In this document: in pieces, positions 4,708-43,864 of the stretch
Layout: every line of letters starts with the position of its first letter
How positions within the stretch are numbered: the first letter of the stretch is position 1
Sequence record: PV654397.1
Length of the DNA stretch: 64,000 bases
Reading direction: 5' to 3' (one strand)
Program-made: the position numbers and the translations under genes
The notes under the pieces: generated by a model
Told to the model about the DNA's origin: nothing
Database searches by the model: none
Seen by the model: the letters and a program-made list of their open reading frames with translations, nothing else

Positions 4708-4929
4708 TCATTCTCCATCATATTCAGTGAGTATTACACTATGTACTGTTTCAATATAGCGTTGTGTTTTTGGTGTGTTGTACTTAGTTACTTCATCAAA
4801 CAATTTAAATAGTGCATGTGTTGGACTTAATGCACGAACAAATACATCAATCTTCTGTACTTCTTTCTTATAACCACGTACATTATTAAACTCAGATACA
4901 TGCTCATACACAATGTAGTAACGATTCAT
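4708..4929 (-). CDS. hypothetical protein
   Basis: 73-aa ORF, coupled to upstream gene. Confidence 0.7.
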   Translation of the reverse strand: MNRYYIVYEHVSEFNNVRGYKKEVQKIDVFVRALSPTHALFKLFDEVTKYNTPKTQRYIETVHSVILTEYDGE

Positions 4930-5441
4930 ATATTAAGTAGTTCCATAAATTCATCGATCAAGGAAGTTCTAATGCACATAACAAATTCAAAATCAACATC
5001 GATAGTATCGAGTAGTTTGAACAACTTTGGTACATTTGGATCATTCAACTGGAAGTTATGAATCAAGCTCTGTTGAAACACACTTTCTTCAGTACTGTAA
5101 TCAATAACAAAATATTCAGCTACACCTGGAGGTGAATAAACATCATATAATATCTGACGTTTATTGTGTGTTTCTGAACCAGGACAATATATAAGTTCTA
5201 TTTCATACGAACCTGCCGAGGATCTATCATAAAACACAATTTCAGTACTGATTATTTCACTACCATCACTTCGTTCATGAAAACATACATCGGCATATCG
5301 TTTGCCATTTGGCTTCAAAATCTCATGAGTTGTTTTACCATAACATTTATCAGTTTCAATGTGAATTTTGTCTTGATATTCAGAACGTCTTACATCATTT
5401 CCACGATTAAACAATAAGATCAACAACTCATTAATATCCAT
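4926..5441 (-). CDS. TEE-FQ-S paralog family protein
   Basis: C-terminal STEESVFQQSLI motif. Confidence 0.75.
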   Translation of the reverse strand: MDINELLILLFNRGNDVRRSEYQDKIHIETDKCYGKTTHEILKPNGKRYADVCFHERSDGSEIISTEIVFYDRSSAGSYEIELIYCPGSETHNKRQILYDVYSPPGVAEYFVIDYSTEESVFQQSLIHNFQLNDPNVPKLFKLLDTIDVDFEFVMCIRTSLIDEFMELLNI

Positions 5442-5641
5442 TATTTCGCCTCGATAACCTTAAGGTTAACAAAATCACCTTTTACTTTCATGCATTTGAA
5501 TTCAGTGCGAGTTTCATCCCCACTATCGCGAGGCCAATGAGTAGCAGAGTAGCACTGGTCTGGTGTTTTATATACACCTTCACCAATAGTACGAGTGATT
5601 TCACCATTGGTGAGAACTACTGCGAGATATAAAGTAAACAT
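5441..5641 (-). CDS. hypothetical protein
   Basis: start set at MFTLYLAVV. Confidence 0.65.
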   Translation of the reverse strand: MFTLYLAVVLTNGEITRTIGEGVYKTPDQCYSATHWPRDSGDETRTEFKCMKVKGDFVNLKVIEAK

Positions 5642-5794
5642 GATATTCGCCTTAGAATAATTTATTAATAATAATAGCACCCAACGCAAGAACTGCAATA
5701 ATTACAGATACCCACATTACTGCATTCACTGTACCAGTTAGTTCTTTATCAAACTCCCTGCACTTCTTACGGTACTCTTCCCACTCTTTGTTAT

Positions 5795-6010
5795 TCACAC
5801 TGCCGCTCCTAATAGGTCGGTAGCTTTCTTCAGTACTACGTCAATTGTTTCCAGTACTGCACCTTTGTGTTCAATTGATACAATATTATTATAAGTATCA
5901 AGGTCCAAGTACTCCATATATTCAGTTTTGAATACACGAACATCAGTACTAGTGATTTTAATATCACAACCTTTATCCCAAATAACCTGCATCATTTCAT
6001 TGGTAGTCAT
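5795..6010 (-). CDS. hypothetical protein
   Basis: 71-aa ORF. Confidence 0.7.
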   Translation of the reverse strand: MTTNEMMQVIWDKGCDIKITSTDVRVFKTEYMEYLDLDTYNNIVSIEHKGAVLETIDVVLKKATDLLGAAV

Positions 6011-6285
6011 TATTCAACCTTATCATAAACAAGTTTGTGTGTGCTTAGTACTTTGTTGAGATGTCCAGGGCATTCATATACATACAATCTCTCCTGACGT
6101 TTTTCCCAACCACCACAGATACGGCCTGATTGTGTACATACCTCATACTCGTTAATAAAAGACTTACCGGTGAATGTACAATCCTGACGAACTAAGTCTT
6201 TTGCACTAAACCTGCCGTCATCATTACATGCTGTAAGAAACATTGTACAGAATACAAAGACAACTGTCAATAGTTTTTTAATCAT
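6010..6285 (-). CDS. putative lipoprotein
   Basis: lipobox LTAC after hydrophobic leader. Confidence 0.7.
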   Translation of the reverse strand: MIKKLLTVVFVFCTMFLTACNDDGRFSAKDLVRQDCTFTGKSFINEYEVCTQSGRICGGWEKRQERLYVYECPGHLNKVLSTHKLVYDKVE

Positions 6286-6650
6286 TTAACATCACCCCAA
6301 CGGAAACCTTTCATATAATTCAAATTCACCTCAACTAGTTCATGTGTTTTTGTACACCAAATGGAGAGAGTTTTTGTAACATCACCAGGTTCAGATTCAT
6401 AATTTACACAATAACCTTCAATGCGTAGAGTTTTGTTAGTCCAATGTTCCCACTCAATCCAAATTTCATTTGGATAATAAACCATATCTTCTTTGAACGT
6501 ATGGAATTGATCCATTGGTAAATGACCTTTAACTTCAATTACTTCAGCACTTCGTGCCAGTTTTTCAAGCTTGTACTTTATTTCAGCAAGATATTCTTCA
6601 TCATTCAGACGAGTTAATAAATCTGTTGCACGGGTTGTATCAAGGCTCAT
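6282..6650 (-). CDS. hypothetical protein
   Basis: 122-aa ORF, coupled. Confidence 0.7.
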   Translation of the reverse strand: MSLDTTRATDLLTRLNDEEYLAEIKYKLEKLARSAEVIEVKGHLPMDQFHTFKEDMVYYPNEIWIEWEHWTNKTLRIEGYCVNYESEPGDVTKTLSIWCTKTHELVEVNLNYMKGFRWGDVK

Positions 6651-6898
6651 TGTTGTACTCCATTAATCACTGAAGTATTGATTCGTGTTTTACCGCTGCT
6701 GTATCCAGTACTGGTATTTGCATTAGGGCAATAAACTGTATACAAGGTTACGCCAGCACCGTCCTTTTGCATACGATAAATCTTACATCCTGCTTCTTGT
6801 AATTCAATAGGGAGAATAAAATCACTTGTGCGTTCTTTGGTTGAAGCGTCACATGCAGTGAGTAAAAATGCAACGAGTACTGCTACGATATATTTCAT
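6647..6898 (-). CDS. putative lipoprotein
   Basis: lipobox LTAC after hydrophobic leader. Confidence 0.75.
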   Translation of the reverse strand: MKYIVAVLVAFLLTACDASTKERTSDFILPIELQEAGCKIYRMQKDGAGVTLYTVYCPNANTSTGYSSGKTRINTSVINGVQQ

Positions 6899-7206
6899 TA
6901 ACGAACCTCCACTTCTTGAGAAAGAGCATGAGTCAGTGCATTTGAATTCGAACTATTCATTTCACGCTGACATACAAACATAATGGCATCTTGTACTGTA
7001 CCTGCGATTTCATACTCACGGCCTTCAGGATCTGTTACCAGATGTTCAACGATACAACCACCACGCAGTACAGAAGCACCAGTACTTACACTAATCCTGT
7101 AACCTAAAAAATCAAACTGCATACATGCGTCAGTAGGTTTCATCCAATAACCGCTGTTTTGATTCAAATCGATGATTACAAAACCTTGAGTGTTAGTTTG
7201 AAACAT
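6898..7206 (-). CDS. hypothetical protein
   Basis: 102 aa, GAGG SD. Confidence 0.75.
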   Translation of the reverse strand: MFQTNTQGFVIIDLNQNSGYWMKPTDACMQFDFLGYRISVSTGASVLRGGCIVEHLVTDPEGREYEIAGTVQDAIMFVCQREMNSSNSNALTHALSQEVEVR

Positions 7207-7227
7207 AGTTAATTCCTCATTTAATTT

Positions 7228-7291
7228 AAAAGGGCGGGAACGCAGTGACGAGTACGATTATGCTGTCTTTCCTTTCACTGCATTCCCTTTT
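7228..7291 (-). ncRNA. promoter-proximal stem-loop (small RNA or attenuator candidate)
   Basis: 13-bp stem GGGAATGCAGTGA/TCACTGCGTTCCC (one G-U), 26-nt loop, downstream T run. Confidence 0.4.
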
Positions 7292-10076: not shown

Positions 10077-11045
10077 TTAAAAATCTTCGAACTCATAACC
10101 TTTTGTCTTAACCATCTTACGCAGTCGTTCCATTGCTTCAGAGTACTTACGGTGCAATGAAGAACGAGCAGTCATGACCTTACCCTTCTCATCTTCAAAA
10201 CCACTCTCAATGATTTCTCGTAGCGTTTCTGGTTCAGAATAAGAACCAATACCATGTACACGTTCAATCAATTCACGGTCTTTGGCAGATAGGTTACTCA
10301 TCATTTCTGCAATACTTTGTACCAGTGGGGTACTGACAGTTTCTACGCCTAAGTTGTAATCAGGTTCAACTGAAGTAACAATGTCAGATAATGTACTTTC
10401 TGAATCATTACTCATTTTCATATTCAATGCTACATAAGTGTTATTGTAAGTTAGACAATTCTTAACGTGTTGAATCTCAATACCAGTCTCTTTTGACACC
10501 ATCTCAGGAGTTGGGTATTTACCATGTTTCCTTTGATACTCTTCTACACAACGTTTCACATAAATGTTATTAACACTCATATAACGTGGGAAATGCACTA
10601 GATAATTAGCATCTGCACTTTCGTTATAGATTGTCATGTACACAGTTGTTGTTGCATATGTAATGAACTTAACATTTTTGGTAGTGTCGAACGTATGAAT
10701 TGCTCGCATTAAACCTTCAACACCATAAGAAATCTTATCTTCAAATGGGATAAAACATGTACACTTACGTGCAACACTTACTACCATTGGATAGTTGTAG
10801 CGAACCAAAAGGTCAATGTTCTTTTCAACGTCAATACCATCACGCACTGCTTGGATGAGCATTTCATTCGTTATCCCTTTAGGGCGAGTTAAGCTGATAC
10901 CTGTTTTTGGTTTCTCAAACTTGTGACCGTCATGTTCTTCTTCTTCTTCGACGGAATCAAGAGCCTCTAATACGTTGACTTCTTCACTAGCAAAACACTC
11001 ATCCAGTACTTCTTCAGAAATTGCATTTAAATCAAGCTTTTTCAC
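10077..11045 (-). CDS. RNA polymerase sigma70-family factor
   Basis: region 2 LVRYNYPMVVSVARK...EDKISYGVEGLMRAIHTFD...KFITYA; region 3 PTPEMVSKETG; region 4 ETLREI. Confidence 0.9.
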   Translation of the reverse strand: MKKLDLNAISEEVLDECFASEEVNVLEALDSVEEEEEHDGHKFEKPKTGISLTRPKGITNEMLIQAVRDGIDVEKNIDLLVRYNYPMVVSVARKCTCFIPFEDKISYGVEGLMRAIHTFDTTKNVKFITYATTTVYMTIYNESADANYLVHFPRYMSVNNIYVKRCVEEYQRKHGKYPTPEMVSKETGIEIQHVKNCLTYNNTYVALNMKMSNDSESTLSDIVTSVEPDYNLGVETVSTPLVQSIAEMMSNLSAKDRELIERVHGIGSYSEPETLREIIESGFEDEKGKVMTARSSLHRKYSEAMERLRKMVKTKGYEFEDF

Positions 11046-15819: not shown

Positions 15820-16977
15820 ATGTCAAGATCGATTGCTGCTGCTGGACGATATAAGTTCGGTGAATGTGGTTATATAGTCGATGGTGCAATTCTCAACGAT
15901 GGGACTAAACTCAAAAATGTTCGAATCTATCGTCAGAGAAGCCATAGATTATATGATTTACTTGATCCTGTAAGTAATGTAATTTATCGTAAAGTACAAA
16001 TTACAACAAAGGATATACAAGGATATCAATTAAACTACAACAAAACTAATGACCAAATCCTAAGTGAAATAAGAAAGAACTCTTTTTTCGTAAGAGGATA
16101 CTCAGATGCTAAACTTGAATCAGATCCTACTGGGTTTGTTTATAAGTTTCTTTTGCACAAAACAATTCTAGGTAGTTCACAAACACTATATAATATGTAC
16201 ACCCCTGAATGCGGGATTATAGATAGAGATATAGACAACATCCTTATGTTCCCAACGTTCGTAGGTGATGATTTGGTAGGTGGTCGCCTATTCAACGCAG
16301 GTTCAGCCATTGATACAACTGGAATGCGTATTACCGTTATACTTCCTGACGGAACCGAGTACTTCACAACTGAAATAATTGATGATGTTTTTAGTATTCC
16401 AGTTGATCCAATTACTCAATCCGGTAAAGGAACCATCATACTCACTTCTGACATATATAATACCAAAACTATTGAATTTGATATACTAGAAAACGGCGAA
16501 GATATTGACTTCGTTACTTCAGTACTTCTATCTCAGTTTGAGTACACGTCCGATGGTATGTACATGGCAACTGTACCAGCTACTGTGCATGAGCGTGGTG
16601 AGTATCTTGCTCTACAAGCATACAGTGGTGATTTATTCCAAATTGGAGTAGACCTCATTGTAGATCCTAGCGGTAATATTACTGTGTACCAAACTGATGA
16701 TGCTCCAATCTCATTGAGTATTATTGGTAAAACCTTACACACCACTCCATATCACAACACGTATACTGATAGTGATTGGGTAGATGATGGTGATTCTATG
16801 TACACACTGTCCATTCCTGCCAGTGAACATGGTAAAATCCTCCCACAAGTTCAAGTCTATGCTGAAGACAATCACGTTGTACTAAGTGAAGTTGAACTAG
16901 ATGCCGATGATAATGTTGTATTAAAAGTTGTTGAACCATTTGGCTGTACTGTAGTCATTGTTGGTTATAACGCATAA
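15820..16977 (+). CDS. putative virion structural protein with two C-terminal beta-rich repeats
   Basis: 385 aa, GGAGG SD, repeats YMATVPATVHE.../YTLSIPASEHG...; late-like promoter. Confidence 0.75.
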   Translation: MSRSIAAAGRYKFGECGYIVDGAILNDGTKLKNVRIYRQRSHRLYDLLDPVSNVIYRKVQITTKDIQGYQLNYNKTNDQILSEIRKNSFFVRGYSDAKLESDPTGFVYKFLLHKTILGSSQTLYNMYTPECGIIDRDIDNILMFPTFVGDDLVGGRLFNAGSAIDTTGMRITVILPDGTEYFTTEIIDDVFSIPVDPITQSGKGTIILTSDIYNTKTIEFDILENGEDIDFVTSVLLSQFEYTSDGMYMATVPATVHERGEYLALQAYSGDLFQIGVDLIVDPSGNITVYQTDDAPISLSIIGKTLHTTPYHNTYTDSDWVDDGDSMYTLSIPASEHGKILPQVQVYAEDNHVVLSEVELDADDNVVLKVVEPFGCTVVIVGYNA

Positions 16978-19137: not shown

Positions 19138-19590
19138 TTAGTTATATGAAGTGAATAGATCGATACTTTCATCATCTACACTGATTAATTTACCAGTTGA
19201 ACTAACAAACACAATATTACCACCAGGGGTGAGTTGAACACGCTGGTTTACTGAATATTGATCACTAAGGTTATAATTAGCCCATTCAACTACATAACGC
19301 TGTTCAACACCATTAGTATCATAAAGATAAACGTGTGTAACATCACGCATTTTTAAACGTTCTAGCAGTGTTGAGTTATCCATGAAATCCGATGGTGTAT
19401 CACTACGCAATGCAACACCGAACTCACCAATACCAGTACTAATAGTTAGACCGTTGGAAAAACGACTACAAAGAGTTTTCTCGTCAGCAATATGCATCCA
19501 TAAAACATTCTTTACATCAATCTCAATGAACTCACAATTTTCAAAAACTAAACCTACTTTAGAAACCTTACCATTAAATTGCATCATCAA
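19138..19590 (-). CDS. hypothetical protein
   Basis: 150 aa. Confidence 0.7.
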   Translation of the reverse strand: MMMQFNGKVSKVGLVFENCEFIEIDVKNVLWMHIADEKTLCSRFSNGLTISTGIGEFGVALRSDTPSDFMDNSTLLERLKMRDVTHVYLYDTNGVEQRYVVEWANYNLSDQYSVNQRVQLTPGGNIVFVSSTGKLISVDDESIDLFTSYN

Positions 19591-20023
19591 CTCCTATTTT
19601 TTTGTATTTTAAAATAAAATCTCTTGCAGCTTTCATAAGTTTAAATGGAATAGCTAATTCTTTGACAGTACTATCCATGAAATGTTCTTCTTCTGTTTTA
19701 TAGAATGTTGACATGAAATGGTCACAATCATCAATTCTATCCCAGAAATCAGAATTACTTGGTTTGTTGGCAATAACAGTGATTGTTTTAGTATAGGAAG
19801 CATGTATCGTTAATCCAATATCACCCTTTTCAACACGAATTATAAATGAACTATCAGATGTATAGTTCAGCCAACAATCTTTACCGAAGTATACAGTACT
19901 GTGTTTCTTCTCAAATGTATTACTGTTTTCAAGTACATCAATGACAATATCAACTGCATTGTCACTTAAAATTTTGACCATATCATCTTCCTCGTAGGGT
20001 TCTGGCAATTTCAAATATACCAT
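19574..20023 (-). CDS. TEE-FQ-S paralog family protein
   Basis: KTEEEHFMDSTV. Confidence 0.75.
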   Translation of the reverse strand: MVYLKLPEPYEEDDMVKILSDNAVDIVIDVLENSNTFEKKHSTVYFGKDCWLNYTSDSSFIIRVEKGDIGLTIHASYTKTITVIANKPSNSDFWDRIDDCDHFMSTFYKTEEEHFMDSTVKELAIPFKLMKAARDFILKYKKIGVDDAI

Positions 20024-20387
20024 TTATGTTGTCAACTGACAATCCACACATATCGTATAATGTAGATAGCTGAAAGAACATATCTTCATCTATAGTAACA
20101 TGTTCAATCTGCATTTGCAAGAGCACTTCACCAAGAAAATGATCGTATGTTTGTATCTTAAAAGAATCATAATATATATCAATGAAGAATTTTGGCACAC
20201 CATAGAACGAAACGACAAGTACAATGTTGTCAGAAGCTTCACATGGAACACTCAATGTATTTTTAAATGAACGGTATTCAAATGTGTACGGGTCTACGTC
20301 ACATGTATAGAATGAATTACACCCTTCAGAAAATATTACACCATTTTCAATTAGCATAGATAGTGTATGTGGTGGAATTTTCAACAT
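19983..20387 (-). CDS. TEE-FQ-S paralog family protein
   Basis: IDEDMFFQLSTLYD. Confidence 0.75.
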   Translation of the reverse strand: MLKIPPHTLSMLIENGVIFSEGCNSFYTCDVDPYTFEYRSFKNTLSVPCEASDNIVLVVSFYGVPKFFIDIYYDSFKIQTYDHFLGEVLLQMQIEHVTIDEDMFFQLSTLYDMCGLSVDNINGIFEIARTLRGR

Positions 20388-20395: not shown

Positions 20396-20812
20396 TTATC
20401 CTTTATTTTGTTGTACGTTTTTATGTAGTACACCACAAATATAAAATAATTTACTTAGATTAGAATAACTTATGTTAGTTAGATCGTATACGAAATTTAG
20501 TTGCATGTACATATCTTCAGTTAAATCATACAACGATTCATCCACATCAATTACGATTTTGTGCGTGGTATCAATCTCTACTTTATTAGGCCACATATCA
20601 ATAACATAATCATTACCATGTTTTTCAGATATGGAAATGAACACATTATCGCTTTGTTCTAAAAACTCCATGTATCCGTTAAGAAATGATCCAGTTATTA
20701 TCTCATATTCACCAGAATAATACGTTGTTCTGGACTCAAATGCATTAAAAAATATAAAACGATATGTTTGGTTGATATACTCATCCATTAAACTAATAAC
20801 TTCTTTATTCAT
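20396..20812 (-). CDS. TEE-FQ-S paralog family protein
   Basis: LTEDMYMQLNFVYD; start set at MNKEV. Confidence 0.7.
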   Translation of the reverse strand: MNKEVISLMDEYINQTYRFIFFNAFESRTTYYSGEYEIITGSFLNGYMEFLEQSDNVFISISEKHGNDYVIDMWPNKVEIDTTHKIVIDVDESLYDLTEDMYMQLNFVYDLTNISYSNLSKLFYICGVLHKNVQQNKG

Positions 20813-20830
20813 TACATTAATCCCCACAAG

Positions 20831-20861
20831 AAAAAAGGCCGATTCATTATGAATCAGCCTT
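20831..20861 (-). terminator. intrinsic terminator
   Basis: AAGGCTGATTCAT-A-ATGAATCGGCCTTTTTT. Confidence 0.75.
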
Positions 20862-20902
20862 AAGTATAACACAGTAGAAGTAAAAATGTCAACTTCTAAA
20901 AT

Positions 20903-22752: not shown

Positions 22753-22786
22753 TGTAAGAAAAATATCATTTTTAATCGTAGATTTG

Positions 22787-25574: not shown

Positions 25575-25952
<378 letters not shown>

Positions 25953-26344: not shown

Positions 26345-26936
<592 letters not shown>

Positions 26937-26940
<4 letters not shown>

Positions 26941-27097
26941 ATTCGTACCAGTAGTTCAATTAAGTACATTTCATATGCTGGATCGTTGATAAGTTTATCA
27001 TACAGATGTGGCTCTGAAATGAATTCCCAATGATACTTTAGCCATTTACCGATACCCGAATATCTAAAATTAATGTCATTCATCCATTCTTCATGTG

Positions 27098-27101
<4 letters not shown>
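26937..27101 (-). CDS. MTHEEW-family small protein (54 aa)
   Basis: MTHEEWMNDINFRYSGIGKWLKYHWEFISEPHLYDKLINDPAYEMYLIELLVRI. Confidence 0.75.
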
Positions 27102-27262
<161 letters not shown>

Positions 27263-28925: not shown

Positions 28926-29096
28926 CTATTCCCTAAATACAAGCTCATATATGAACCATCGATTTCCATCCTCATCTAGTACATATAAATCGAACTGATG
29001 TTTGTCTCGTAAAATATCGTAATGACCATCACGAAATCCATTCCCAAACAGATCATATCGTTCTTTCATAATAGACATCCATTCTTCATGTGTCAT
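28926..29096 (-). CDS. MTHEEW-family small protein (56 aa)
   Basis: MTHEEWMSIMKERYDLFGNGFRDGHYDILRDKHQFDLYVLDEDGNRWFIYELVFRE. Confidence 0.75.
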   Translation of the reverse strand: MTHEEWMSIMKERYDLFGNGFRDGHYDILRDKHQFDLYVLDEDGNRWFIYELVFRE

Positions 29097-29596
29097 TTAC
29101 GTTGCATCCAATGTGAACCAGTCCAGACTTTTTTCTTTTCACGTTCTATCTGTCGTTGTTTTAATTCTTCATCCCACAGAATATTGTCGTTTAAGAAATA
29201 GTTATATAGTTCTTTTAACTTCAAATTATCTGAAAATGCGGGAAAGTACTTATTATCACATACCAAACTCTCTTGAAAATGTACATCTTCATCGGTGATG
29301 TATTGATATGTGAAAATTCTATTCGGGTTTGGATAGATACCATTTGTTTCAGAGAAACATTTTCTAAGTAGTCTTTTACCAAAATCACAGATAATAGTAT
29401 CTTTACGAATAAAATTCCAGCGAGTAACCATTTTAATTGTTAGAGTTTGATAATTCTGATCTAAGCTTATTTGATGTTCACCATCTTTGTGCTTATAGTG
29501 ATAAGTACCTTGTTTTCGAACTGTTCGTTCAAATTCATTAACATTAATTTTACTTAAAATCTCAGTAATACTTTCCGGTACATGCGTAATGAGCAT
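29093..29596 (-). CDS. TEE-FQ-S paralog family protein
   Basis: TDEDVHFQESLV. Confidence 0.75.
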   Translation of the reverse strand: MLITHVPESITEILSKINVNEFERTVRKQGTYHYKHKDGEHQISLDQNYQTLTIKMVTRWNFIRKDTIICDFGKRLLRKCFSETNGIYPNPNRIFTYQYITDEDVHFQESLVCDNKYFPAFSDNLKLKELYNYFLNDNILWDEELKQRQIEREKKKVWTGSHWMQRK

Positions 29597-29641: not shown

Positions 29642-29824
29642 CTAGTCAATTTTTTTGTCTCTAACCGCAAGCTCATAGATGAACCAGTGATTACTATCCT
29701 CATCAAGTACAAATGATTTGAAAAGTTGTTTATCTTTTAACACATCATAATGACCTTGGCGTATACCAAAACAAAAAGGATTATGTTTAAATTTTAGTTC
29801 ATCTAACCATTCTTTGTGTGTCAT
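29642..29824 (-). CDS. MTHEEW-family small protein (60 aa)
   Basis: MTHKEWL...GHYDVLKDK...VLDEDSNHWFIYELAVR, aligned to 28926-29096. Confidence 0.75.
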   Translation of the reverse strand: MTHKEWLDELKFKHNPFCFGIRQGHYDVLKDKQLFKSFVLDEDSNHWFIYELAVRDKKID

Positions 29825-30006
29825 CTTATTTTGTCCATGACTGCTATACTAAAATATGTACCAAAATCATCACAATTGATGATGTTGTTATAGTACTCGA
29901 TTGGGTTACGCAATGATATATACAATTCAAGCTTAAAATAGTATATATCTGCTGCATTTATATTATAGTGTAGATTAAACCACTCATCAAATGTCTTAGG
30001 CTGCAT
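29821..30006 (-). CDS. hypothetical protein, possible distant MTHEEW relative
   Basis: KTFDEWF...FSIAVMDK. Confidence 0.6.
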   Translation of the reverse strand: MQPKTFDEWFNLHYNINAADIYYFKLELYISLRNPIEYYNNIINCDDFGTYFSIAVMDKIR

Positions 30007-30400
30007 TATATTTATCTTTATAAAAATCCATGATTTTAGTCAACAGTACTGCAATCGTATAATCTAAATCAGGATAAAGTAAATTGTACTGAAATTCTTC
30101 CTCTACACTATAGTTTGTGGTGCAGTACTGATAGTCTTTATAACCAATGGAAAAATGGTTAGGATACAATGTACAACGAAAACGATATGCTTCATCTGTC
30201 ATATAATCATTGTATTCAACACAGAAGTATAGTGATTTGGCATTTAATTCAATAAGCTCAACGAAACCATCAGGTAATGAATGGTTATAAATTACTGAAT
30301 CTTCATTAAACCATTCATAGTATTTTTCCAAAAAATCACTAATGGATACATCCAGACTTTGTATAGGTGGAGTTATGATAATTTGAACTTCTTTATTCAT
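29996..30400 (-). CDS. TEE-FQ-S paralog family protein
   Basis: SVEEEFQYNLLY. Confidence 0.7.
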   Translation of the reverse strand: MNKEVQIIITPPIQSLDVSISDFLEKYYEWFNEDSVIYNHSLPDGFVELIELNAKSLYFCVEYNDYMTDEAYRFRCTLYPNHFSIGYKDYQYCTTNYSVEEEFQYNLLYPDLDYTIAVLLTKIMDFYKDKYNAA

Positions 30401-30903
30401 TTCGACCCCTTACTATATTTCACGTATGGGCTATCATACAGATCATAACTTTTTTGTGCACGTTCTTTTCGGCGTTCATACATGATTCTATCATAATCTT
30501 TGGCTTTCTGATTTGCTTCATTATACAATTTTAAAATTAGCAAAAAAGCATCAAGGTCGGGGTAGTTTGCTGGATTGATAGTACTCAGCATAAATCGTTC
30601 TTCTTCAGTTCTAGCTAAGTCAAACTCGTACTTAATAGTTTTATATCCACTCCATTTATATGTATGTGTTACTTTATTAGTAAGTACATTGTATCCAACG
30701 AAATCAGTACTACCATCAAGTACGCGAGTAATCATAATAGATGTACCAATGACAATCTGCACAGAACTCATTTCTGAAGTTTTAAAGTAATATATATTAC
30801 CACGTCGCAGATTAACTTCTCGATCTCCAATGCGAACATGCTTAATAACTTCCATTAATGGTTCTGGTACACCACGAATCGGCATGTTAGTATTCCTCAA
30901 CAA
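30397..30903 (-). CDS. TEE-FQ-S paralog family protein
   Basis: RTEEERFMLSTIN. Confidence 0.75.
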   Translation of the reverse strand: MLRNTNMPIRGVPEPLMEVIKHVRIGDREVNLRRGNIYYFKTSEMSSVQIVIGTSIMITRVLDGSTDFVGYNVLTNKVTHTYKWSGYKTIKYEFDLARTEEERFMLSTINPANYPDLDAFLLILKLYNEANQKAKDYDRIMYERRKERAQKSYDLYDSPYVKYSKGSK

Positions 30904-31503: not shown

Positions 31504-31896
31504 TTACCAGCATGTTTTCATAACTTCTGTGATGTAAATCATTTTATCTTTTAGTTCATAAGGGATGCAAATTTCACCTGGGCTTAACGTTGTGTTCTTT
31601 TGAAACTCATCCTCTTCGGAATCAGCCAGGTAAAATGGGTGCGTCACAAAGTTATCATCAACTGGACGATTATGTGGTTTCATTAATGCATCATGATTGA
31701 CAAAATAATAAGCATCAATATCAGGACGGAAATACAAACAATCAACCTTAATGCACGGGTGTAACCATAAGGACAAAGAATATGTTATTTGGTTACCAAT
31801 TTGTCTTGGACCAGATGCAATTGTATTGATGTTATTTTTATCTTGTACCATTTCATAAATGAAATCTATCATTTCACGTAGTTCAGATTCAGTCAT
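31504..31896 (-). CDS. TEE-FQ-S paralog family protein
   Basis: DSEEDEFQKNTTL. Confidence 0.7.
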   Translation of the reverse strand: MTESELREMIDFIYEMVQDKNNINTIASGPRQIGNQITYSLSLWLHPCIKVDCLYFRPDIDAYYFVNHDALMKPHNRPVDDNFVTHPFYLADSEEDEFQKNTTLSPGEICIPYELKDKMIYITEVMKTCW

Positions 31897-36293: not shown

Positions 36294-36737
36294 TTACTCC
36301 TTAAAGTAGATATCACGAATTTGCTTAATCATCTCTAACTCTTGAAGTCCTATCATACCGAAGTTTTCTTGTACTGTCAACTGTTGGAAGTACATTTCCT
36401 CTAAATTATTATAAGGAATATCCACTAATGATAAAGGTACTCGTTCTTCACTGAATGCCAGATCTTCAACTAAATGTTTTATAATCATAACAGTAAATGA
36501 ATCTTTTTGTATATGAAATTTGTAAAACGTTTGGTTAGTAGTGAACATTGTGTTTGATGGATGGAAACCCATTTCAACAAATACTGTATCTTTATCATTA
36601 TGTGTGCAATATGTACATCTTGAATTCGCAAGAACTTTAGATTTTGGGTAATAAAAATCACCCAGCAACTTCTGTCGTTTCCAGTCCTCATATACAACTG
36701 GATGCTTAACCTTCTTCAATCGGTGCAGTACTGTCAT
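36294..36737 (-). CDS. TEE-FQ-S paralog family protein
   Basis: NLEEMYFQQLTVQE. Confidence 0.75.
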   Translation of the reverse strand: MTVLHRLKKVKHPVVYEDWKRQKLLGDFYYPKSKVLANSRCTYCTHNDKDTVFVEMGFHPSNTMFTTNQTFYKFHIQKDSFTVMIIKHLVEDLAFSEERVPLSLVDIPYNNLEEMYFQQLTVQENFGMIGLQELEMIKQIRDIYFKE

Positions 36738-37117
36738 AGTTTTTTCCAGTCCAATGAATCGAAATCGATTTGTTCAGGGTTATCAACAGCGACAACTCGT
36801 GCATTATGAAGAGTTTCAAAGTAGCCGTTCCACGGTGTTCGTAATGGAACAGTCACATCGCCAACTTTAACCAAGAATGAATATTCTGGTGATATTGGGT
36901 CAAACCACTCTTTTTGTTTAGCATTTTCCATGATCGTTTCGTGTTCTTTTGTATAGCAATTATCTTGCTTCATATAAAACACCCAATGCTCTTTTAGGCA
37001 CTGTAAAGCAGCAACTGCTTCCTCTTTAGAAGACCATTGAATATCAATTGTATTAAGAACGTCATAACAATTTTCAGTATCACCTGTAGTGTAATGTACT
37101 TCAATGCAGTATTTCAT
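36734..37117 (-). CDS. conserved phage hypothetical protein
   Basis: 127 aa, YTTGDT...W...EEA pattern. Confidence 0.75.
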   Translation of the reverse strand: MKYCIEVHYTTGDTENCYDVLNTIDIQWSSKEEAVAALQCLKEHWVFYMKQDNCYTKEHETIMENAKQKEWFDPISPEYSFLVKVGDVTVPLRTPWNGYFETLHNARVVAVDNPEQIDFDSLDWKKL

Positions 37118-37572
37118 TATTCAACACCTTTTAGTAATTTACAAATTTCAATCATATGATAATAACATGTATTCCAAAATTGCCCAGTAGTACTACCAAC
37201 ATCATGCACAGTACTTTGTTGGAAAACATATTCATCATTGAACAACTTTTTAATGTCATCAATGTAAAATTCTGGTTTTGAATCATTATTGTATTCAATA
37301 CTCGTTTCACCATCTGGATCAAGTGAAATTGATGATATGTCGTGAATTCCTATCGGATTTGTTGGATAAATTCTCAACGTAAGAGGATAGAAGTCTGGAT
37401 CGGTTTCATATGTATATTCGATTATGTAATTACCATCTCCAGTGATTGAGTTATATTTAAATGTAGGTTCAAATACATTATGGACATTATAACCTAGTTT
37501 ATTCATCTCGTTAAGATGTAATAATATTTTATGTAAAGTCCCTAAGACATGAATCAAATTATCAATTTTCAT
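37117..37572 (-). CDS. TEE-FQ-S paralog family protein
   Basis: FNDEYVFQQSTVHD. Confidence 0.75.
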   Translation of the reverse strand: MKIDNLIHVLGTLHKILLHLNEMNKLGYNVHNVFEPTFKYNSITGDGNYIIEYTYETDPDFYPLTLRIYPTNPIGIHDISSISLDPDGETSIEYNNDSKPEFYIDDIKKLFNDEYVFQQSTVHDVGSTTGQFWNTCYYHMIEICKLLKGVE

Positions 37573-38111
37573 TTACGATCCTTTGAAAAGTTCAGTTTAA
37601 AAGATTTACCAAATTCCATTGTAGCTTTACCCAGATTGTTAATATTTTCTTTCAACATTTCTTGCATCTTTCTTACACTTTCATTCCAGGCTTCCTCTTC
37701 TTTACGGAGGATTGGTCGCAATCGTTCCTGAATATCGTTGAAACGTGTATTGAGTTCAACCAATGATTCATATGTGAAATCTTTCATATCGATGATAGTA
37801 CTACGTTGAAAGAATTCTTCTTCGGATAAATTACTCAAAATGATTTTATCACTACCAATAGATAATGTCAATTCATCATCTTGATTTTTTTTAATTACAA
37901 TACGTACAGGTGATTTTATAGTAATGTGAACATCATGATTATTAAAAGTTTCAGTTTTGTTTGACGTTCTGAATTGTAGTCTTCCGGTTAGTGCGTGTAC
38001 TGGCATTGGGTTCTTTTTACCAGTAATAACATCTTCCCACGAATCAAGGATATTATTAATAATTTTAACATAAGGAACTGTCATATATGCACCTATGAAA
38101 AATCCACGCAT
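37569..38111 (-). CDS. TEE-FQ-S paralog family protein
   Basis: LSEEEFFQRSTIID; start probably MTVPY. Confidence 0.75.
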   Translation of the reverse strand: MRGFFIGAYMTVPYVKIINNILDSWEDVITGKKNPMPVHALTGRLQFRTSNKTETFNNHDVHITIKSPVRIVIKKNQDDELTLSIGSDKIILSNLSEEEFFQRSTIIDMKDFTYESLVELNTRFNDIQERLRPILRKEEEAWNESVRKMQEMLKENINNLGKATMEFGKSFKLNFSKDRK

Positions 38112-38126: not shown

Positions 38127-38657
38127 TTAATCGAGTATAGTAACTTCAATCAAACGAATTTCGATGAATTCGTTTTCAGTTTCCCATGATGAACCTAATT
38201 TCTTATTAAGTTCAGTTTTAACATCACTTTTAAATTTTCCCATAGTATTAGGAATAATTTGTTTGGTTAGTTTGTCATAACCACAATAAAACATAGGTTT
38301 CTCCCTTCGAGATATTAGCTCAACAAAATCCTTTGGATATGCAGGTATATTATGCATCACTTCATGAATGCACTCAGTACTTGAATCTTGTACTTTGTAC
38401 ATTACATTAAGTTTACCTTTGAAAGTGCGAATCATATCAACAATAATACCTTTACCGGATTTAAGTAAAGTTCCATTCTTTGTATGAGAACAATAGAATA
38501 CCTCATCACCAATATTAGGATAGTACAAATTAAATTCTAATTCTTCCTTTGATGACTGACGTTGAAATTTCATTACACGTTCAGTATAGGTGGGGTAGTT
38601 CTTCATGTTCAAAAGAATATCTCTCTTAGTAAGTGTGATATAACTGGCATAGTCCAT
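38127..38657 (-). CDS. hypothetical protein
   Basis: 176 aa. Confidence 0.7.
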   Translation of the reverse strand: MDYASYITLTKRDILLNMKNYPTYTERVMKFQRQSSKEELEFNLYYPNIGDEVFYCSHTKNGTLLKSGKGIIVDMIRTFKGKLNVMYKVQDSSTECIHEVMHNIPAYPKDFVELISRREKPMFYCGYDKLTKQIIPNTMGKFKSDVKTELNKKLGSSWETENEFIEIRLIEVTILD

Positions 38658-39469
38658 CCATTCCCAAGCATTTTGTATGCTTGTGTCTTACTAGACACTT
38701 TAAAGAAATCTACAGGAATACCCTGTAATTTACAACATTCTACTACACTTAAGTGTCTATAGTCAATATTTCTTTTACCATTCTCCAATAGATATTGACG
38801 ATTAATCGTTGGGTCACGAAACACCAACTGTCGTCTTGATTTATTAAAGTACTGGTTACAATCACCACCCTTAAAATAGTTAGCATCTATACAGTACGAA
38901 GCGGTTCTGTCAGTGTACCAACCATCTTCAATGATATCTTGAAGTTTAGGGGCATTTGATAATGCAGGTGGTATAAAAAGCTTATCAGTACTGCACCAGT
39001 AGTATCTCTGCCTGAAGTGAGGCGTATAATGCTGGGAATTTATCAGTACTGGTGTGATTCCTAAAATACTATTAATGTATTCTTTGAAATCTTCCTTCAT
39101 TTTAACATTCTCGAACAGAAATTGCAAGTTTGGATTTACACTTTTGATGTGCTCAAAAATATCAACCATAACCAAAAATAACTGTCCACGTATATCATTC
39201 AAGCCACCTTGCTTACCAGCAACAGACCAGGCTTGACATGGGAATCCTCCCATGAGTAAATCTATCTTATCCCACTCAATATCCCATTCTTTCCACTTAG
39301 TCACATCACCTAACTGGATAATATCAGGAAAATTCTCGGAAGATTCAGCAATTGCGTACTTGTCAATTTCAGATGAGTAATATTTTTCAACTGGAATACC
39401 TGCATCTGCCAATGCCATATATCCAACGCTCATTCCATTAAAAAGTGACAGTACTCTGATAGGTTTCAT
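38609..39469 (-). CDS. DNA (cytosine-5)-methyltransferase
   Basis: motif I VLSLFNG, IV GGFPCQ, VI ENV, VIII RQRYYW, X LGNGW. Confidence 0.9.
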   Translation of the reverse strand: MKPIRVLSLFNGMSVGYMALADAGIPVEKYYSSEIDKYAIAESSENFPDIIQLGDVTKWKEWDIEWDKIDLLMGGFPCQAWSVAGKQGGLNDIRGQLFLVMVDIFEHIKSVNPNLQFLFENVKMKEDFKEYINSILGITPVLINSQHYTPHFRQRYYWCSTDKLFIPPALSNAPKLQDIIEDGWYTDRTASYCIDANYFKGGDCNQYFNKSRRQLVFRDPTINRQYLLENGKRNIDYRHLSVVECCKLQGIPVDFFKVSSKTQAYKMLGNGWTMPVISHLLREIFF

Positions 39470-40126: not shown

Positions 40127-40582
40127 TTATTTGAACTCGATTTCTGGATAATGATTATAGAACATCTCACGTACTGCGTCAAGCTGTTCTTTAAATTTCT
40201 CAATGTCATCAAGAGTTAGTACAGTGTCACTAACAGTACTCAACTGAAAAAGTGCCTCTTCAGTACTGTTTTCTGATAAATCAAATGTACATGATGAATC
40301 ATCTGTTATAATATTATCACATATTTCAAATGTGTCAATATGAACATCATTGAGTAGATCACCACTATAATCATTATATATGAACACAAAAATGTATGAT
40401 GGTTTTTTTATCTCAGTTTCTGACTCATAGGCTACCAAATCATATGTTACGTAACATTTAAAGTCAGGTGAATCGTATTCCATAGATACAATTCCTATAT
40501 CACGATATTGATTCGCTTCACTGATTAAATCCGGTATAGGTGTAATACTAAGTAAATGGAAAAACTGTCCTGGATTTAGCAT
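40127..40582 (-). CDS. TEE-FQ-S paralog family protein
   Basis: STEEALFQLSTVSD. Confidence 0.75.
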   Translation of the reverse strand: MLNPGQFFHLLSITPIPDLISEANQYRDIGIVSMEYDSPDFKCYVTYDLVAYESETEIKKPSYIFVFIYNDYSGDLLNDVHIDTFEICDNIITDDSSCTFDLSENSTEEALFQLSTVSDTVLTLDDIEKFKEQLDAVREMFYNHYPEIEFK

Positions 40583-41031
40583 TTGATTACCTTCGGGTTT
40601 TGCTCTGTGATATCAAACATAGATAGAACGAAATCATTTAGCTTTTCAACACAATTGATTATAGTGCTTAAATCAGAATAACTAACTGTTAAATTTTTAA
40701 CAAGAGATTCCTGAAAGTATCCTTCTTCAGTTGAACAATAACTCACATTTGATATAGTCTCATAATGTACATCTTTGATTGTTTTACATGTTATAATTTC
40801 TATTAAATCCGATGTTGTGTTATATAATAATATAAATGTTGTTGTTCGTGAATTCTTATTGTAAAATGCGAGTTCCGTACTGTCATATGTTTTCTCAATA
40901 AGAACATTGTACTCTTCCGAAAACGATGTGGAAATTCTAATTATCTCTTCTGGATCAGGAACATAAGAGCCATCAAATTTACAAGACAATGCAATTTCAA
41001 AATGATTTTTTATTTCATCAATTTCCATCAT
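40576..41031 (-). CDS. TEE-FQ-S paralog family protein
   Basis: STEEGYFQESLV. Confidence 0.75.
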   Translation of the reverse strand: MMEIDEIKNHFEIALSCKFDGSYVPDPEEIIRISTSFSEEYNVLIEKTYDSTELAFYNKNSRTTTFILLYNTTSDLIEIITCKTIKDVHYETISNVSYCSTEEGYFQESLVKNLTVSYSDLSTIINCVEKLNDFVLSMFDITEQNPKVIKC

Positions 41032-41423
41032 AGCTCACCATTAATTTTTATATTTGTATAGTCTAATGCTTTTTTAACAATATCAATTTCTGTAATTCCT
41101 ATTACATTTTCCTCAATCAATGACAATTGGAATAGTTCCTCTTCCTCAATATCAATACTATGGGTTCTTGACCAATAATCTTTGAAGTCATATGCATATC
41201 GTATTGTATTTTCTTTAATATCAAGTACCAATATAACCATACCATCGTGTAGGTATGTCAGTGTTTTTGCGTATCTATTAAAAATTAACCTATCTGGTGA
41301 ACCTATTGGTAGTTGAAATAAATTTCTAGTATCTTGAACAATAACAAAATCATTATCTATATTTTTATTCAAGTCACCTAAAATGTCATATATAGTAGTC
41401 ATGTTAATCTTGACCCTCAGCAT
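41028..41423 (-). CDS. TEE-FQ-S paralog family protein
   Basis: IEEEELFQLSLI. Confidence 0.75.
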   Translation of the reverse strand: MLRVKINMTTIYDILGDLNKNIDNDFVIVQDTRNLFQLPIGSPDRLIFNRYAKTLTYLHDGMVILVLDIKENTIRYAYDFKDYWSRTHSIDIEEEELFQLSLIEENVIGITEIDIVKKALDYTNIKINGEL

Positions 41424-41823
41424 TTCTGATGATTCGCATTACTTCTCTGGATACGTTGTATACTTTTTTATAGTACTCAAATGTAACTGAACCAAAATCA
41501 TTAACAGTACTATCCATGAAGAACGATTCTTCGGTGCAATACACACCTGTAATTGAAACATGCTCATGATGGAATTTAGCATCTTTCCAGTAACGGAATT
41601 CGAAAATAAATTGCCCGTCATGACCAACCCTACAACACTCAGCACGGTCACTGTCTACGCAGCTAATCACAATATCCCTTTCGGAGTCATACCAGATATT
41701 TCCAATATTTGTTTCAATAACTGCATAATCAATTTTTGTAGAATTGGGAATTACACCTTTTTTTACCAGTACTAGACTGGTATTATCAATATCAAGTAAA
41801 CTTACCATATCAACTCCCCACAA
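41404..41823 (-). CDS. TEE-FQ-S paralog family protein
   Basis: CTEESFFMDSTVND. Confidence 0.75.
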   Translation of the reverse strand: MWGVDMVSLLDIDNTSLVLVKKGVIPNSTKIDYAVIETNIGNIWYDSERDIVISCVDSDRAECCRVGHDGQFIFEFRYWKDAKFHHEHVSITGVYCTEESFFMDSTVNDFGSVTFEYYKKVYNVSREVMRIIRNAEGQD

Positions 41824-42220
41824 TTACTGTGTTTTTAATTTCTAACAATTCACTATACATCTTCTTCAATTGTACAATATCTTCATATAAAATACCACCC
41901 ATATCATCAATCAAAGAACGTTGGAATAGTGATTCATCTGACTGTATCGTGTCCAAATCAGAAATTTTCAATACGGTAACTGGGTTTAGGGTGTTTACAA
42001 TAAGTTTGTTTGTGTATGGGATGTATGTGATCTTGATATTCATTTCCGAATCAAGGGCATACAACCTCAAAACAGACAAATCACCACAAAGTTGGATTTT
42101 TGGTTCATCAAACTCATCAGACCACCACATAGTACTAGTCATATAATTGACGTGTTGGTTCAAATGTGATATATCCAAATCGAAATAATATTTTAGTTCA
42201 TTGTGTAAATCTAAACTCAT
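41810..42220 (-). CDS. TEE-FQ-S paralog family protein
   Basis: QSDESLFQRSLIDD. Confidence 0.75.
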   Translation of the reverse strand: MSLDLHNELKYYFDLDISHLNQHVNYMTSTMWWSDEFDEPKIQLCGDLSVLRLYALDSEMNIKITYIPYTNKLIVNTLNPVTVLKISDLDTIQSDESLFQRSLIDDMGGILYEDIVQLKKMYSELLEIKNTVIVGS

Positions 42221-42250: not shown

Positions 42251-42279
42251 ATTGTAGGATAAACCCACGATAATGTCAA
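42251..42279 (-). promoter_or_regulatory. sigma70-type promoter
   Basis: TTGACA-17-TACAAT. Confidence 0.8.
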
Positions 42280-42671
42280 GATGTGAATTGCTTATACCAG
42301 TGATACAGTTCTTTCAATTCTTCAGTACTGAATAGAACATCTTCAATCGTTGTTTGTTGGAAGTGGTAATCTTCATTTAAGTACATTGAAATATTTTTAT
42401 ATACTTTTCGATTACATTTCCCAAGAAATGATGTTCTTTTGGATGTATATTCAATAAATGTTAACTTATCTAATTCTACATCCAATGACAATTTCATACA
42501 GTATTCAGTATCATCTACGTACATAAGTTTATTTGAATAACAATCAACTGTGATATATTCTTTATGTGAGAATTGGTATATACCATTAAATTTTTTACCA
42601 TTTGTACTTCTGAATTTTTCAAGGTAATAAGAGAGTGGTTTAGATATTGTACTACCAATAGTATTATTCAT
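42276..42671 (-). CDS. TEE-FQ-S paralog family protein
   Basis: LNEDYHFQQTTIED. Confidence 0.75.
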   Translation of the reverse strand: MNNTIGSTISKPLSYYLEKFRSTNGKKFNGIYQFSHKEYITVDCYSNKLMYVDDTEYCMKLSLDVELDKLTFIEYTSKRTSFLGKCNRKVYKNISMYLNEDYHFQQTTIEDVLFSTEELKELYHWYKQFTS

Positions 42672-42693
42672 AGAACCTCAAAATTTAGACAAG

Positions 42694-42718
42694 AAAAATG
42701 CCCCGAAGGTCGGGGCAG
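42694..42718 (-). terminator. intrinsic terminator
   Basis: TGCCCCGAC-CT-TCGGGGCA plus T run. Confidence 0.75.
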
Positions 42719-42728
42719 TACGAAAAAG

Positions 42729-42809
42729 ATTTTGTACGAAAAAGGGGAATAATACAATAAAATAATAACGCATCATTATTATGTAAGGGAGGAAAGTAAC
42801 ATGATAATG
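42729..42809. ncRNA. two hairpins with SD/GGA-like (+) or anti-SD (-) loops
   Basis: + strand loops CGAAAAAGGGGAATAA and AAGGGAGGAAAGTA; 11-bp stem 42774-84 / 42799-809. Confidence 0.45.
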
Positions 42810-42828
42810 TTAACCATTACTGGTATAA

Positions 42829-43380
42829 TTATTTATCATTTAATTCTTTTAATTGAGCTTGTATATCACCAGAAAGTTTACGGATTTTCTTGAAACAGTA
42901 CACGCTATCATCAAGTTCAAGTTCTAGGCCGTGTGTGATTGCATAAAGCATTTCAGCAAGTACTAGATCCTGACGCATCCAGTTACCATTTTTATAGGTT
43001 GTCATTACACAATAAGGACAGTGGCTGTTTCCGGTTTGTTTACCCAGGAACACAGATTGGATTGTATCATGCTTGAAACCCACAAAAGATTGGTTGATCT
43101 TGTTGATTTCAGCTACTACGTCCATTTGTGCACCAGTGTTGATTGCAAACACTTGGTCACCGTTCTCGGTTTTGTTAATGTTTAGTTCAATATCACTACC
43201 AAGTTTACGAACAGCCAATGTATAAAGTAGGATTTCATACATATCATAATTGGTTGTTTCGCCATTTGGTGCAGTTACATCGAGACTAACACCATGCATT
43301 TTAACTTCAGTACTGAATCCATCTTTATCTGCTAGAAAATCAGTGATTTGTTCAGTTAGGATTTTAATTTGGTCAATCAT
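42829..43380 (-). CDS. hypothetical protein
   Basis: 183 aa. Confidence 0.8.
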   Translation of the reverse strand: MIDQIKILTEQITDFLADKDGFSTEVKMHGVSLDVTAPNGETTNYDMYEILLYTLAVRKLGSDIELNINKTENGDQVFAINTGAQMDVVAEINKINQSFVGFKHDTIQSVFLGKQTGNSHCPYCVMTTYKNGNWMRQDLVLAEMLYAITHGLELELDDSVYCFKKIRKLSGDIQAQLKELNDK

Positions 43381-43400
43381 TATTCATATCCTTATGTTGG

Positions 43401-43425
43401 AAAAGCCCCCATTACGGAGGCTTTT
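43401..43425 (-). terminator. intrinsic terminator
   Basis: AAAAGCCTCC-GTAAT-GGGGGCTTTT. Confidence 0.7.
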
Positions 43426-43435
43426 GTTAATCTAA

Positions 43436-43864
43436 TTATAGGGAAGCTTCGTATTCAGCTACAATGTCAACCATCTCATTGACAAAGTTGATGTGGTCAT
43501 GAGTTACAGTACGGAAATCATAAACCAGTGATTGTTGGAAGAATACGTCTTCAGCCAGATTACCTTCAAAGTTCAGGTCGATGTTTTCTTCATCGTTGGT
43601 TGGAGCAACTTTGATATTTAGTTGATTTTCATCAACGACCAATTTCACTACACAACCCAATGCAATCGCCAGTACATAGGCAGGTTTCTTAGCTGCTTCA
43701 GAACGGAATGGAGCACGTAGTGCACAAATGGTGCTGCTAATCTCATCATTCAGTTCTTTATATTTAACGTTAATCATCAGTTCTTCAATTTTGACGCTCT
43801 CGATTACACGACCAGTTTCAGCAGCGAAGAAAGAGTGGTTACGGATAGTTTGTTCGATATTCAT
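43436..43864 (-). CDS. TEE-FQ-S paralog family protein
   Basis: LAEDVFFQQSLVYD. Confidence 0.75.
   Translation of the reverse strand: MNIEQTIRNHSFFAAETGRVIESVKIEELMINVKYKELNDEISSTICALRAPFRSEAAKKPAYVLAIALGCVVKLVVDENQLNIKVAPTNDEENIDLNFEGNLAEDVFFQQSLVYDFRTVTHDHINFVNEMVDIVAEYEASL

Follow-up and report, generated by a model that had tools for sequence, protein, structure and literature searches.

A 64,000-nucleotide stretch of the genome of Escherichia phage WPEC5, called the window below, raises the question why so many of its small open reading frames (ORFs) carry variants of one short motif near their C-terminus. The window is 100% identical to part of record PV654397.1 (381,326 bp), a window position being the record position minus 62,000, and almost all of its genes lie on the minus strand. 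WPEC5 is placed in the genus Asteriusvirus, among the RaK2/121Q-like jumbo myoviruses. Ecwhy_1, fEgEco12, BF17 and CMSTMSU are close relatives (96.8-98.5% identity in window 40-44 kb), and ph0011, 121Q and PBECO4 are about 82% identical to WPEC5. An earlier note on this DNA had read 22 of the ORFs as a family of modular adaptors, in which a constant C-terminal module docks on a shared partner and diversified N-termini recognize different targets. The existence, size, architecture and conservation of a family are well supported. As to its nature, the reading favored here, with slightly less than even confidence, is that a single small acidic domain, recognizable by the motif, expanded long ago in this phage lineage, and that its copies would act as early host-takeover binders built from a conserved keel and a variable sheet.

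The first question is whether the ORFs belong together at all. All 22 are present on the minus strand and each contains a motif-like string, located 32-84 residues from the C-terminus. Pairwise BLAST among the window ORFs connects only a few members, so that profiles are needed. A hidden Markov model (HMM) was grown from five BLAST-linked seed ORFs and iterated to convergence, with decoys scored alongside. It converges on 19 of the 22 ORFs without a decoy below E=0.01, and leave-one-out models recover every one of the 19 (E 7e-9 to 2.4e-4). Of the 253 window ORFs, 20 match a strict regular expression, every one of them on the coding strand; in shuffled ORFs the mean number of matches is 0.19 and the highest is 2. 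Altogether, the HMM supports 21 of the 22 ORFs statistically; the ORF at 31504-31896 is doubtful. The tandem runs that the earlier note had pointed out are confirmed. The 22 ORFs are listed here in window coordinates.

4926-5441, minus strand: member of 171 amino acids, an isolated copy; leave-one-out E 2.6e-6; has its own PHROG of unknown function.
19574-20023, minus strand: member of 149 amino acids; leave-one-out E 4.4e-6; ph0011 ortholog with 92% identity and a ratio of non-synonymous to synonymous substitution rates (dN/dS) of 0.40.
19983-20387, minus strand: member of 134 amino acids; leave-one-out E 1.4e-6; dN/dS 0.22.
20396-20872, minus strand: member of up to 158 amino acids, with a GTG start (the true start may be downstream); leave-one-out E 2.4e-6; dN/dS 0.12.
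21541-21900, minus strand: member of 119 amino acids, the shortest in the window; leave-one-out E 3.8e-8; BLAST-linked seed.
21893-22309, minus strand: member of 138 amino acids; leave-one-out E 4.7e-8; BLAST-linked seed.
25575-25952, minus strand: divergent member of 125 amino acids; E 4e-4 with a profile lacking it, above all decoys; top non-member in every leave-one-out run.
26341-26706, minus strand: member of 121 amino acids; leave-one-out E 4.4e-6.
29093-29596, minus strand: member of 167 amino acids with a basic C-terminal extension, isoelectric point (pI) 8.7; leave-one-out E 2.9e-5; shares a PHROG with 30397-30903.
29996-30400, minus strand: divergent member of 134 amino acids, in which the spacing from the acidic pair to the aromatic is shorter by one residue; E 0.0075 under a 146-sequence profile lacking it (best decoy 0.13); joins the genome-wide profile.
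30397-30903, minus strand: member of up to 168 amino acids, with a TTG start and a basic C-terminal extension; leave-one-out E 2e-4; PHROG match from residue 7.
31504-31896, minus strand: doubtful member of 130 amino acids with a motif-like string only; profile E 0.63, 2.1 and 0.28, in the decoy range; its ph0011 ortholog scores E 0.048.
36294-36737, minus strand: member of 147 amino acids; leave-one-out E 2.4e-4.
37117-37572, minus strand: member of 151 amino acids; leave-one-out E 9e-7.
37569-38111, minus strand: member of up to 180 amino acids with a long, charged, helical C-terminal extension; leave-one-out E 2.6e-6; PHROG match from residue 10.
40127-40582, minus strand: member of 151 amino acids, the most acidic (pI 4.05); leave-one-out E 8.4e-8.
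40576-41031, minus strand: member of 151 amino acids, second structure model (AlphaFold, mean confidence 76.8); leave-one-out E 6.5e-8.
41028-41423, minus strand: member of 131 amino acids; leave-one-out E 9.1e-5.
41404-41823, minus strand: member of up to 139 amino acids, with a TTG start but probably beginning 5 codons later, first structure model; leave-one-out E 1.4e-8.
41810-42220, minus strand: member of 136 amino acids, with an 11/12 sigma-70-like promoter just upstream at 42279-42251; leave-one-out E 7.1e-9.
42276-42671, minus strand: member of 131 amino acids; leave-one-out E 1.2e-6; ph0011 ortholog shorter (82 aligned codons).
43436-43864, minus strand: member of 142 amino acids; leave-one-out E 2e-8; dN/dS 0.04.

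The family extends far beyond the window. An iterative profile search over all 1,062 WPEC5 ORFs of at least 60 amino acids, together with reversed decoys, converges on 71 members of 103-229 amino acids, all on the minus strand, with the best decoy at convergence at E 0.1 or worse. The figure of 22 was thus a large underestimate for the genome, even though 21 hold in the window. An independent regular expression finds 59 ORFs genome-wide (0.42 expected), 54 of which are already in the HMM set. Two of the remaining five fall in the right-arm array described next, and the true number is therefore probably slightly above 71. The left arm (record 23.9-105.9 kb) has 24 members, including 21 in the window. 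The right arm (record 260-353 kb) has 47, most of which form an array with hardly any interruption at 324.5-353.4 kb. The replication and structural core is located between these two arms, and the genome-wide profile finds no member within the 21,662-bp terminal repeat. Family coding DNA amounts to 33 kb, i.e., 8.7% of the WPEC5 record, and to about 9% of the genes.

Among the 71 members, the motif consists of two Glu (77 and 70%), an aromatic residue (96%), Gln (94%) and Ser (75%). The next two columns after Ser are Leu (48%) or Thr (38%) and Val (48%) or Ile (37%), and Asp is found two positions on (51%). Only the last ~40 residues are detectably similar in sequence. Profiles of the N-terminal parts alone give no significant signal, neither by leave-one-out in the window nor by leave-cluster-out with 152 sequences, and BLAST separates these parts into 87 components, which agrees with the earlier remark that the upstream sequence is barely alignable. 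The highest identity between paralogs is 57%, most pairs being below 30% or below BLAST detection, and the few recent duplicates are neighbors in the right arm. The paralogs are old and the expansion is specific to the lineage of RaK2-like jumbo phages.

Lineage-specific expansions in jumbo phages have been taken as evidence of genome growth by duplication (PMC7824862; PMC5646251). In phage G, an expansion of a zinc ribbon to ~35 copies was termed unprecedented (PMC7824862). The WPEC5 family differs from such earlier examples in being another protein, with about twice the copies and far more diverged (most below 30% identity). Because the copies are so diverged, paralog counts at BLAST level, such as about 10% of the gene products in RaK2 (PMC3622015) and 22 ORFs in CBB (PMC5259590), miss families of this kind and overlook deep expansion.

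Relatives of the family are numerous. When 1.84 billion representative proteins are searched exhaustively with the profile, 141 are found at E <=0.001, nearly all of 105-190 amino acids and many aligning across most of the profile. Where a name or a long contig is available, the source is a phage-sized contig (250-360 kb) or an E. coli assembly that includes the phage. The distant representatives map to jumbo phages of Salmonella (Munch, 7t3), Erwinia and Yersinia (fHe-Yen9-04), and Erwinia phage pEa_SNUABM_47 has at least 5 members within one 50-kb stretch. Fold matches in BFVD are uncharacterized proteins of RaK2, GAP32 and phage UB. Among those found, relatives occur only in RaK2-like jumbo phages, and their spread across these phages indicates that the family belongs to the RaK2-like clade as a whole. 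In PHROGs, the window paralogs are divided over separate groups of unknown function; 24510, 30548, 30841, 17453, 38573, 28118, 23322, 24027, 22160 and others each correspond to a near-exact match of one window paralog, and only weak cross-hits between groups hint at one superfamily. A literature search found no description of the WPEC5 family.

Similarity restricted to a short motif could also arise without a protein family, as a DNA-level repeat, as chance ORFs or as decaying, functionless duplicates, and it fits with this that most members are annotated as hypothetical only and that paralog identities are so low. However, synonymous codons vary freely at the conserved motif positions, so that conservation acts at the protein level and a DNA-level repeat is ruled out as the source of similarity; all members, moreover, lie on the coding strand. 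Each of the 20 window members between 19.5 and 44 kb has a syntenic 1:1 ortholog in ph0011, the one relative and region compared, and the pooled dN/dS of the family is 0.195. Non-family genes give 0.098 and neighboring small ORFs are similar to the family. Given the 1:1 orthologs and a dN/dS of about 0.2, the paralogs are individually maintained under purifying selection and are not decaying copies. Adding a confident AlphaFold model and the 141 public relatives, we regard the artefact reading as refuted by motif codons and ortholog dN/dS, and give it next to no credence.

The same comparison bears on the idea of diversified N-termini. Split by part, dN/dS is 0.21 for the N-terminal part, 0.09 for the motif and 0.21 for the remaining C-terminal part. 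The N-terminal part, which had been expected to diversify, does not evolve faster than the rest, so that an ongoing arms race is not apparent on the time-scale separating WPEC5 and ph0011.

Two observations on these genes stand apart. In the 71 members, CAG makes up 58% of the motif Gln codons compared to 35% elsewhere in the same genes, an apparent excess. Secondly, the synonymous divergence (dS) between WPEC5 and ph0011 orthologs is strongly mosaic in window 19.5-64 kb, with values for individual genes anywhere between 0.01 and more than 1.9, which suggests frequent recombination between Asteriusvirus lineages.

What the members look like was approached by AlphaFold2, run with a 146-sequence family alignment on two members from the window. 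The model of 41404-41823 (mean predicted local distance difference test, pLDDT, 87.8; predicted template modeling score, pTM, 0.81) has seven consecutive strands followed by the motif helix (98-107) and a second helix (115-135). The ORF at 40576-41031 is very divergent, its N-terminal part scoring lowest against the family profile of that part; its model (pLDDT 76.8, pTM 0.64) has an N-terminal helix, six strands, the motif helix (102-111) and a helix at 118-142. Both models agree on an antiparallel meander sheet of 6-7 strands with two helices after it, the motif being the first helix. Hence the predicted structures are not unrelated folds, but one topology in two divergent members. For a RaK2 relative, BFVD offers a model computed independently, which aligns to the 41404-41823 model over 136 columns with a template modeling score (TM) of 0.83, and the N-terminal part of the family varies little in length (interquartile range 87-102 residues). 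Since the two models share their topology, the BFVD model agrees and the N-terminal length is narrow, each copy is predicted to be one compact alpha+beta domain, in which the N-terminal ~95 residues form the sheet.

The conserved residues are found in the motif helix and where the second helix begins, and include the near-invariant aromatic and other hydrophobic positions. Each predicted helix is preceded by Thr or Ser and has acidic residues in its first turn, as is typical of N-caps. When the motif helix is drawn as a wheel, its conserved positions, hydrophobic ones included, span about two thirds of the circumference. From this periodicity and the pLDDT values, the motif helix is probably largely buried. 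By the same periodicity, the two helices would pack on the sheet as a structural keel, leaving the other sheet face and the loops free to vary. The conserved polar residues of the motif helix may in addition form a shared interface, e.g., for oligomerization as in p32-like proteins.

These predictions change the picture of a modular adaptor. What stands of it is a constant element, a highly variable remainder and tandem expansion. A separable C-terminal docking module with unrelated N-termini is not supported, given two models that each form a single compact domain, the constrained length of the N-terminal part and the core-like nature of the conserved residues. A version in which the conserved helices dock on a shared phage or host machine, with a phage ClpA-like ATPase/protease as candidate, and the variable part recruits targets, analogous to poxvirus ANK/F-box proteins, can nevertheless be formulated. 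The invariant polar residues (two Glu, Gln, Ser and Asp) are not obviously needed for a purely structural role, WPEC5 encodes a ClpA-superfamily protein (record 211578-213866), a relative encodes ClpP, and Clp adaptors are known in jumbo phages (PMC7824862). However, the models show one domain and not two modules, the conserved positions include hydrophobic core residues, and ankyrin, F-box, BTB and ClpS-like domains are not found with Pfam. We consider docking adaptors possible but unlikely.

The likeness to poxvirus ANK/F-box or BTB proteins has to be qualified in the same way. As in the ANK/F-box and BTB-kelch families, one constant and one variable part are found in an expanded family, and a comparison with the multigene families of large DNA viruses is fair. 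Membership is excluded: Pfam gives no match to ankyrin, F-box/PRANC, BTB or kelch for 19 members (for Ank even at E up to 1), the long members contain no additional known Pfam domain, and the models show a beta sheet and not helical repeats. The WPEC5 architecture is thus predicted to be a single domain instead of repeats plus a docking box. The bacterial host, moreover, lacks Skp1-cullin-F-box (SCF) ligases, which provide the Skp1/cullin partner of PRANC. Closer in genome organization are the African swine fever virus (ASFV) multigene families (MGF) and the poxvirus host-range families, which likewise comprise dozens of diverged tandem paralogs in both arms around a conserved core; early expression, suggested by promoter-like sequences, would be a further likeness. 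In contrast, there is no sequence or domain relationship, WPEC5 is a phage, and the ASFV and poxvirus families behave accordion-like, whereas WPEC5 and ph0011 have the same copy number and gene order in the region compared.

Searches for known folds yield one lead. The top PDB fold match for both models is p32/gC1qR/Mam33 (1p32, 6szw, 1yqf, 3qv0). The p32 proteins are strongly acidic and form trimeric rings, and their fold is a meander of seven antiparallel strands with flanking helices, two of them C-terminal. The order of sheet and helices predicted for the WPEC5 proteins agrees with this, and most of these are acidic too, but they are smaller and the match is weak (Foldseek E 0.015-0.03, TM 0.28-0.36, root-mean-square deviation 10-17 A). 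The Pfam MAM33 model has no match at E up to 1, and PDB sequence profiles do not return p32. The fold likeness is therefore a weak, model-based lead and not a membership. It does allow the possibility that the family consists of p32/Mam33-like acidic oligomers, assembled via the conserved helices, possibly from mixed paralogs, and acting as charged decoys or nucleic-acid mimics. Besides the fold match and the shared beta-meander with two helices, the acidity of most members would suit such a role. The median pI of members is 4.6 compared to 5.9 for other ORFs, and 77% of the 22 listed ORFs have a pI below 5. However, five of the 22 have a pI above 6.5, two being neutral and three basic, and the basic ones carry charged C-terminal extensions. 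Together with the poor scores and the unmatched MAM33 model, this makes p32-like oligomers improbable.

The only PDB profile hit is 6trs_D (E 0.22), in which the motif is aligned to the protease site of an expression tag; it is an artefact. Expression-tag sequences are a trap for profile searches with this family, owing to the resemblance of the motif to a tag protease site. We set aside the possibility that the motif itself is a protease site of that type: it lies in a confidently predicted helix, the position following Gln varies, and the annotation contains no protease of this kind.

Small paralogs of a single domain that have diverged and stand in tandem also recall bacterial poly-immunity loci, in which case each paralog would neutralize a different toxin or competing phage function. 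A contact-dependent-inhibition immunity protein is present among the weak fold matches, but at E 0.23 this is not significant. Pfam and PADLOC give no match to an immunity family and no toxin genes are seen beside the members. An immunity or exclusion array is accordingly a very remote prospect.

When the genes are expressed is suggested by their surroundings. The window contains 39 matches of at least 11/12 to the sigma-70 promoter consensus, e.g., at 44965-44937, 35819-35791, 33959-33930, 28615-28588 and 28471-28443 (minus strand). All are on the coding strand and none on the other; 3.4 are expected. These near-perfect coding-strand promoters suggest early expression. Ten of the 39 are perfect (12/12). 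Genome-wide, such matches cluster in the arms and in the terminal repeat, and few lie in the structural core. A phage sigma factor, a C5 methyltransferase and a TelA-like gene nearby belong to the same early context. In CBB, the equivalent region of short ORFs with RpoD-like promoters has been read as an early host-takeover region (PMC5259590). The T4-type late-promoter octamer is unusable as a marker of gene timing, as it is rare throughout the WPEC5 genome. From the promoter-like sequences we infer that the family genes are probably transcribed early by the host sigma-70 RNA polymerase.

Promoters and gene position also bear on the suggestion that the members are virion-packaged, inner-body-like proteins, the conserved acidic stretch being a processing or targeting signal for a prohead protease. 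Inner-body proteins of phiKZ are paralogous, and the motif opens with a few residues of which the last is Glu, presumably like the short T4-type and phiKZ-type head-protease sites. A phiKZ-like inner body is seen in bubblegrams of 121Q (PMC5646251). However, the genes lie amid strong sigma-70-type promoters and away from the structural module, the putative site is inside a confidently predicted helix of a folded domain, and no member whose record annotation was seen is called a virion or structural protein. A packaged inner-body protein is, on this evidence, very improbable.

The reading favored at the outset, i.e., an expanded small domain of early host-takeover binders, can be worked out as follows. 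After early transcription by the host polymerase, the products, acidic for the most part, would serve as a set of stoichiometric binders, decoys or inhibitors aimed at different host proteins while the cell is taken over; defense nucleases or other nucleic-acid-binding proteins may be among these targets. With the conserved helical hairpin as keel, the variable sheet face would give each paralog its own target specificity. Such a function is proposed by analogy with the early genes of other large phages and with the multigene families of large DNA viruses.

Several points weigh against this. Pfam, PADLOC and PDB sequence searches give no match for the members, so that no known function is found, and PHROGs matches are only to families of unknown function. 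The p32 likeness scores as weakly as described. Binding partners of the members are hypothetical, and early expression is deduced from promoter-like sites only, which are less dense over the right-arm array. The burial of the motif is derived from helix periodicity and pLDDT and not from coordinates, and the two models are both of window members and built on the same family alignment. Finally, an active counter-defense arms race might be expected to leave traces in selection or copy number, but there is no signal of positive selection and no change in copy number compared to ph0011 (20 versus 20, one region).

A bolder variant is a combinatorial system, in which a common helical interface co-assembles paralogs or docks on a phage machine (e.g., a Clp-type ATPase) and each variable sheet captures a different host protein. 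With its 71 or more copies, the family would then exceed every lineage-specific protein expansion so far reported for a phage. We hold this to be a long shot. If true, the adaptor families of poxviruses and giant viruses would have a counterpart among the viruses of bacteria.

The family is relevant because at least 71 orphan genes of one genome now fall into a single family, for whose domain a fold is predicted. Jumbo phages of the RaK2/121Q type continue to be isolated and have been put forward for therapy, although about two thirds of their genes are called 'hypothetical'. The members provide a defined set of putative early proteins with variable surfaces that can be compared across phages and, if they bind different host factors, a catalogue of host-takeover or counter-defense specificities.

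Other genes are present in and around the family region of the window. The putative early region includes a gene for a sigma-70-family factor, which matches regions 2 and 3 in Pfam, and relatives have larger clusters of tRNA genes in the same kind of region. Interspersed with the main family is a second, separate mini-family of five minus-strand ORFs of 54-60 amino acids with a common N-terminal start, of which a profile detects no additional copies in the WPEC5 genome.

10077-11045, minus strand: sigma-70-family factor.
22786-22858, minus strand: tRNA-Thr gene, amid members.
25130-25214, minus strand: tRNA-Asn gene, amid members.
25227-25305, minus strand: tRNA-Met gene, amid members.
25460-25549, minus strand: tRNA-Ser gene, amid members.
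26776-26940, minus strand: mini-family ORF with the shared N-terminal start.
26937-27101, minus strand: mini-family ORF with the shared N-terminal start.
27098-27262, minus strand: mini-family ORF with the shared N-terminal start.
28926-29096, minus strand: mini-family ORF with the shared N-terminal start.
29642-29824, minus strand: mini-family ORF with the shared N-terminal start.
38609-39469, minus strand: C5 cytosine DNA methyltransferase ORF of 286 amino acids; the annotated ph0011 ortholog has 626.
50012-51229, minus strand: TelA-like protein (toxic anion resistance family), just downstream of the family region.

The sole large ORF on the plus strand of the window (15820-16977, 385 amino acids) is without a Pfam match and may be a mobile or foreign insertion. 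Elsewhere in the record, positions 1-21662 and 359665-381326 form the exact direct terminal repeat of 21,662 bp, in which small ORFs and sigma-70-like promoters are dense. Runs of ~20-30 ORFs of 60-85 amino acids each are found at record 21.9-26.6 kb and 353.4-359.6 kb. A further tandem array consists of ~15 RCC1-like ('chromosome condensation regulator') genes on the plus strand at record 26.6-44.9 kb.

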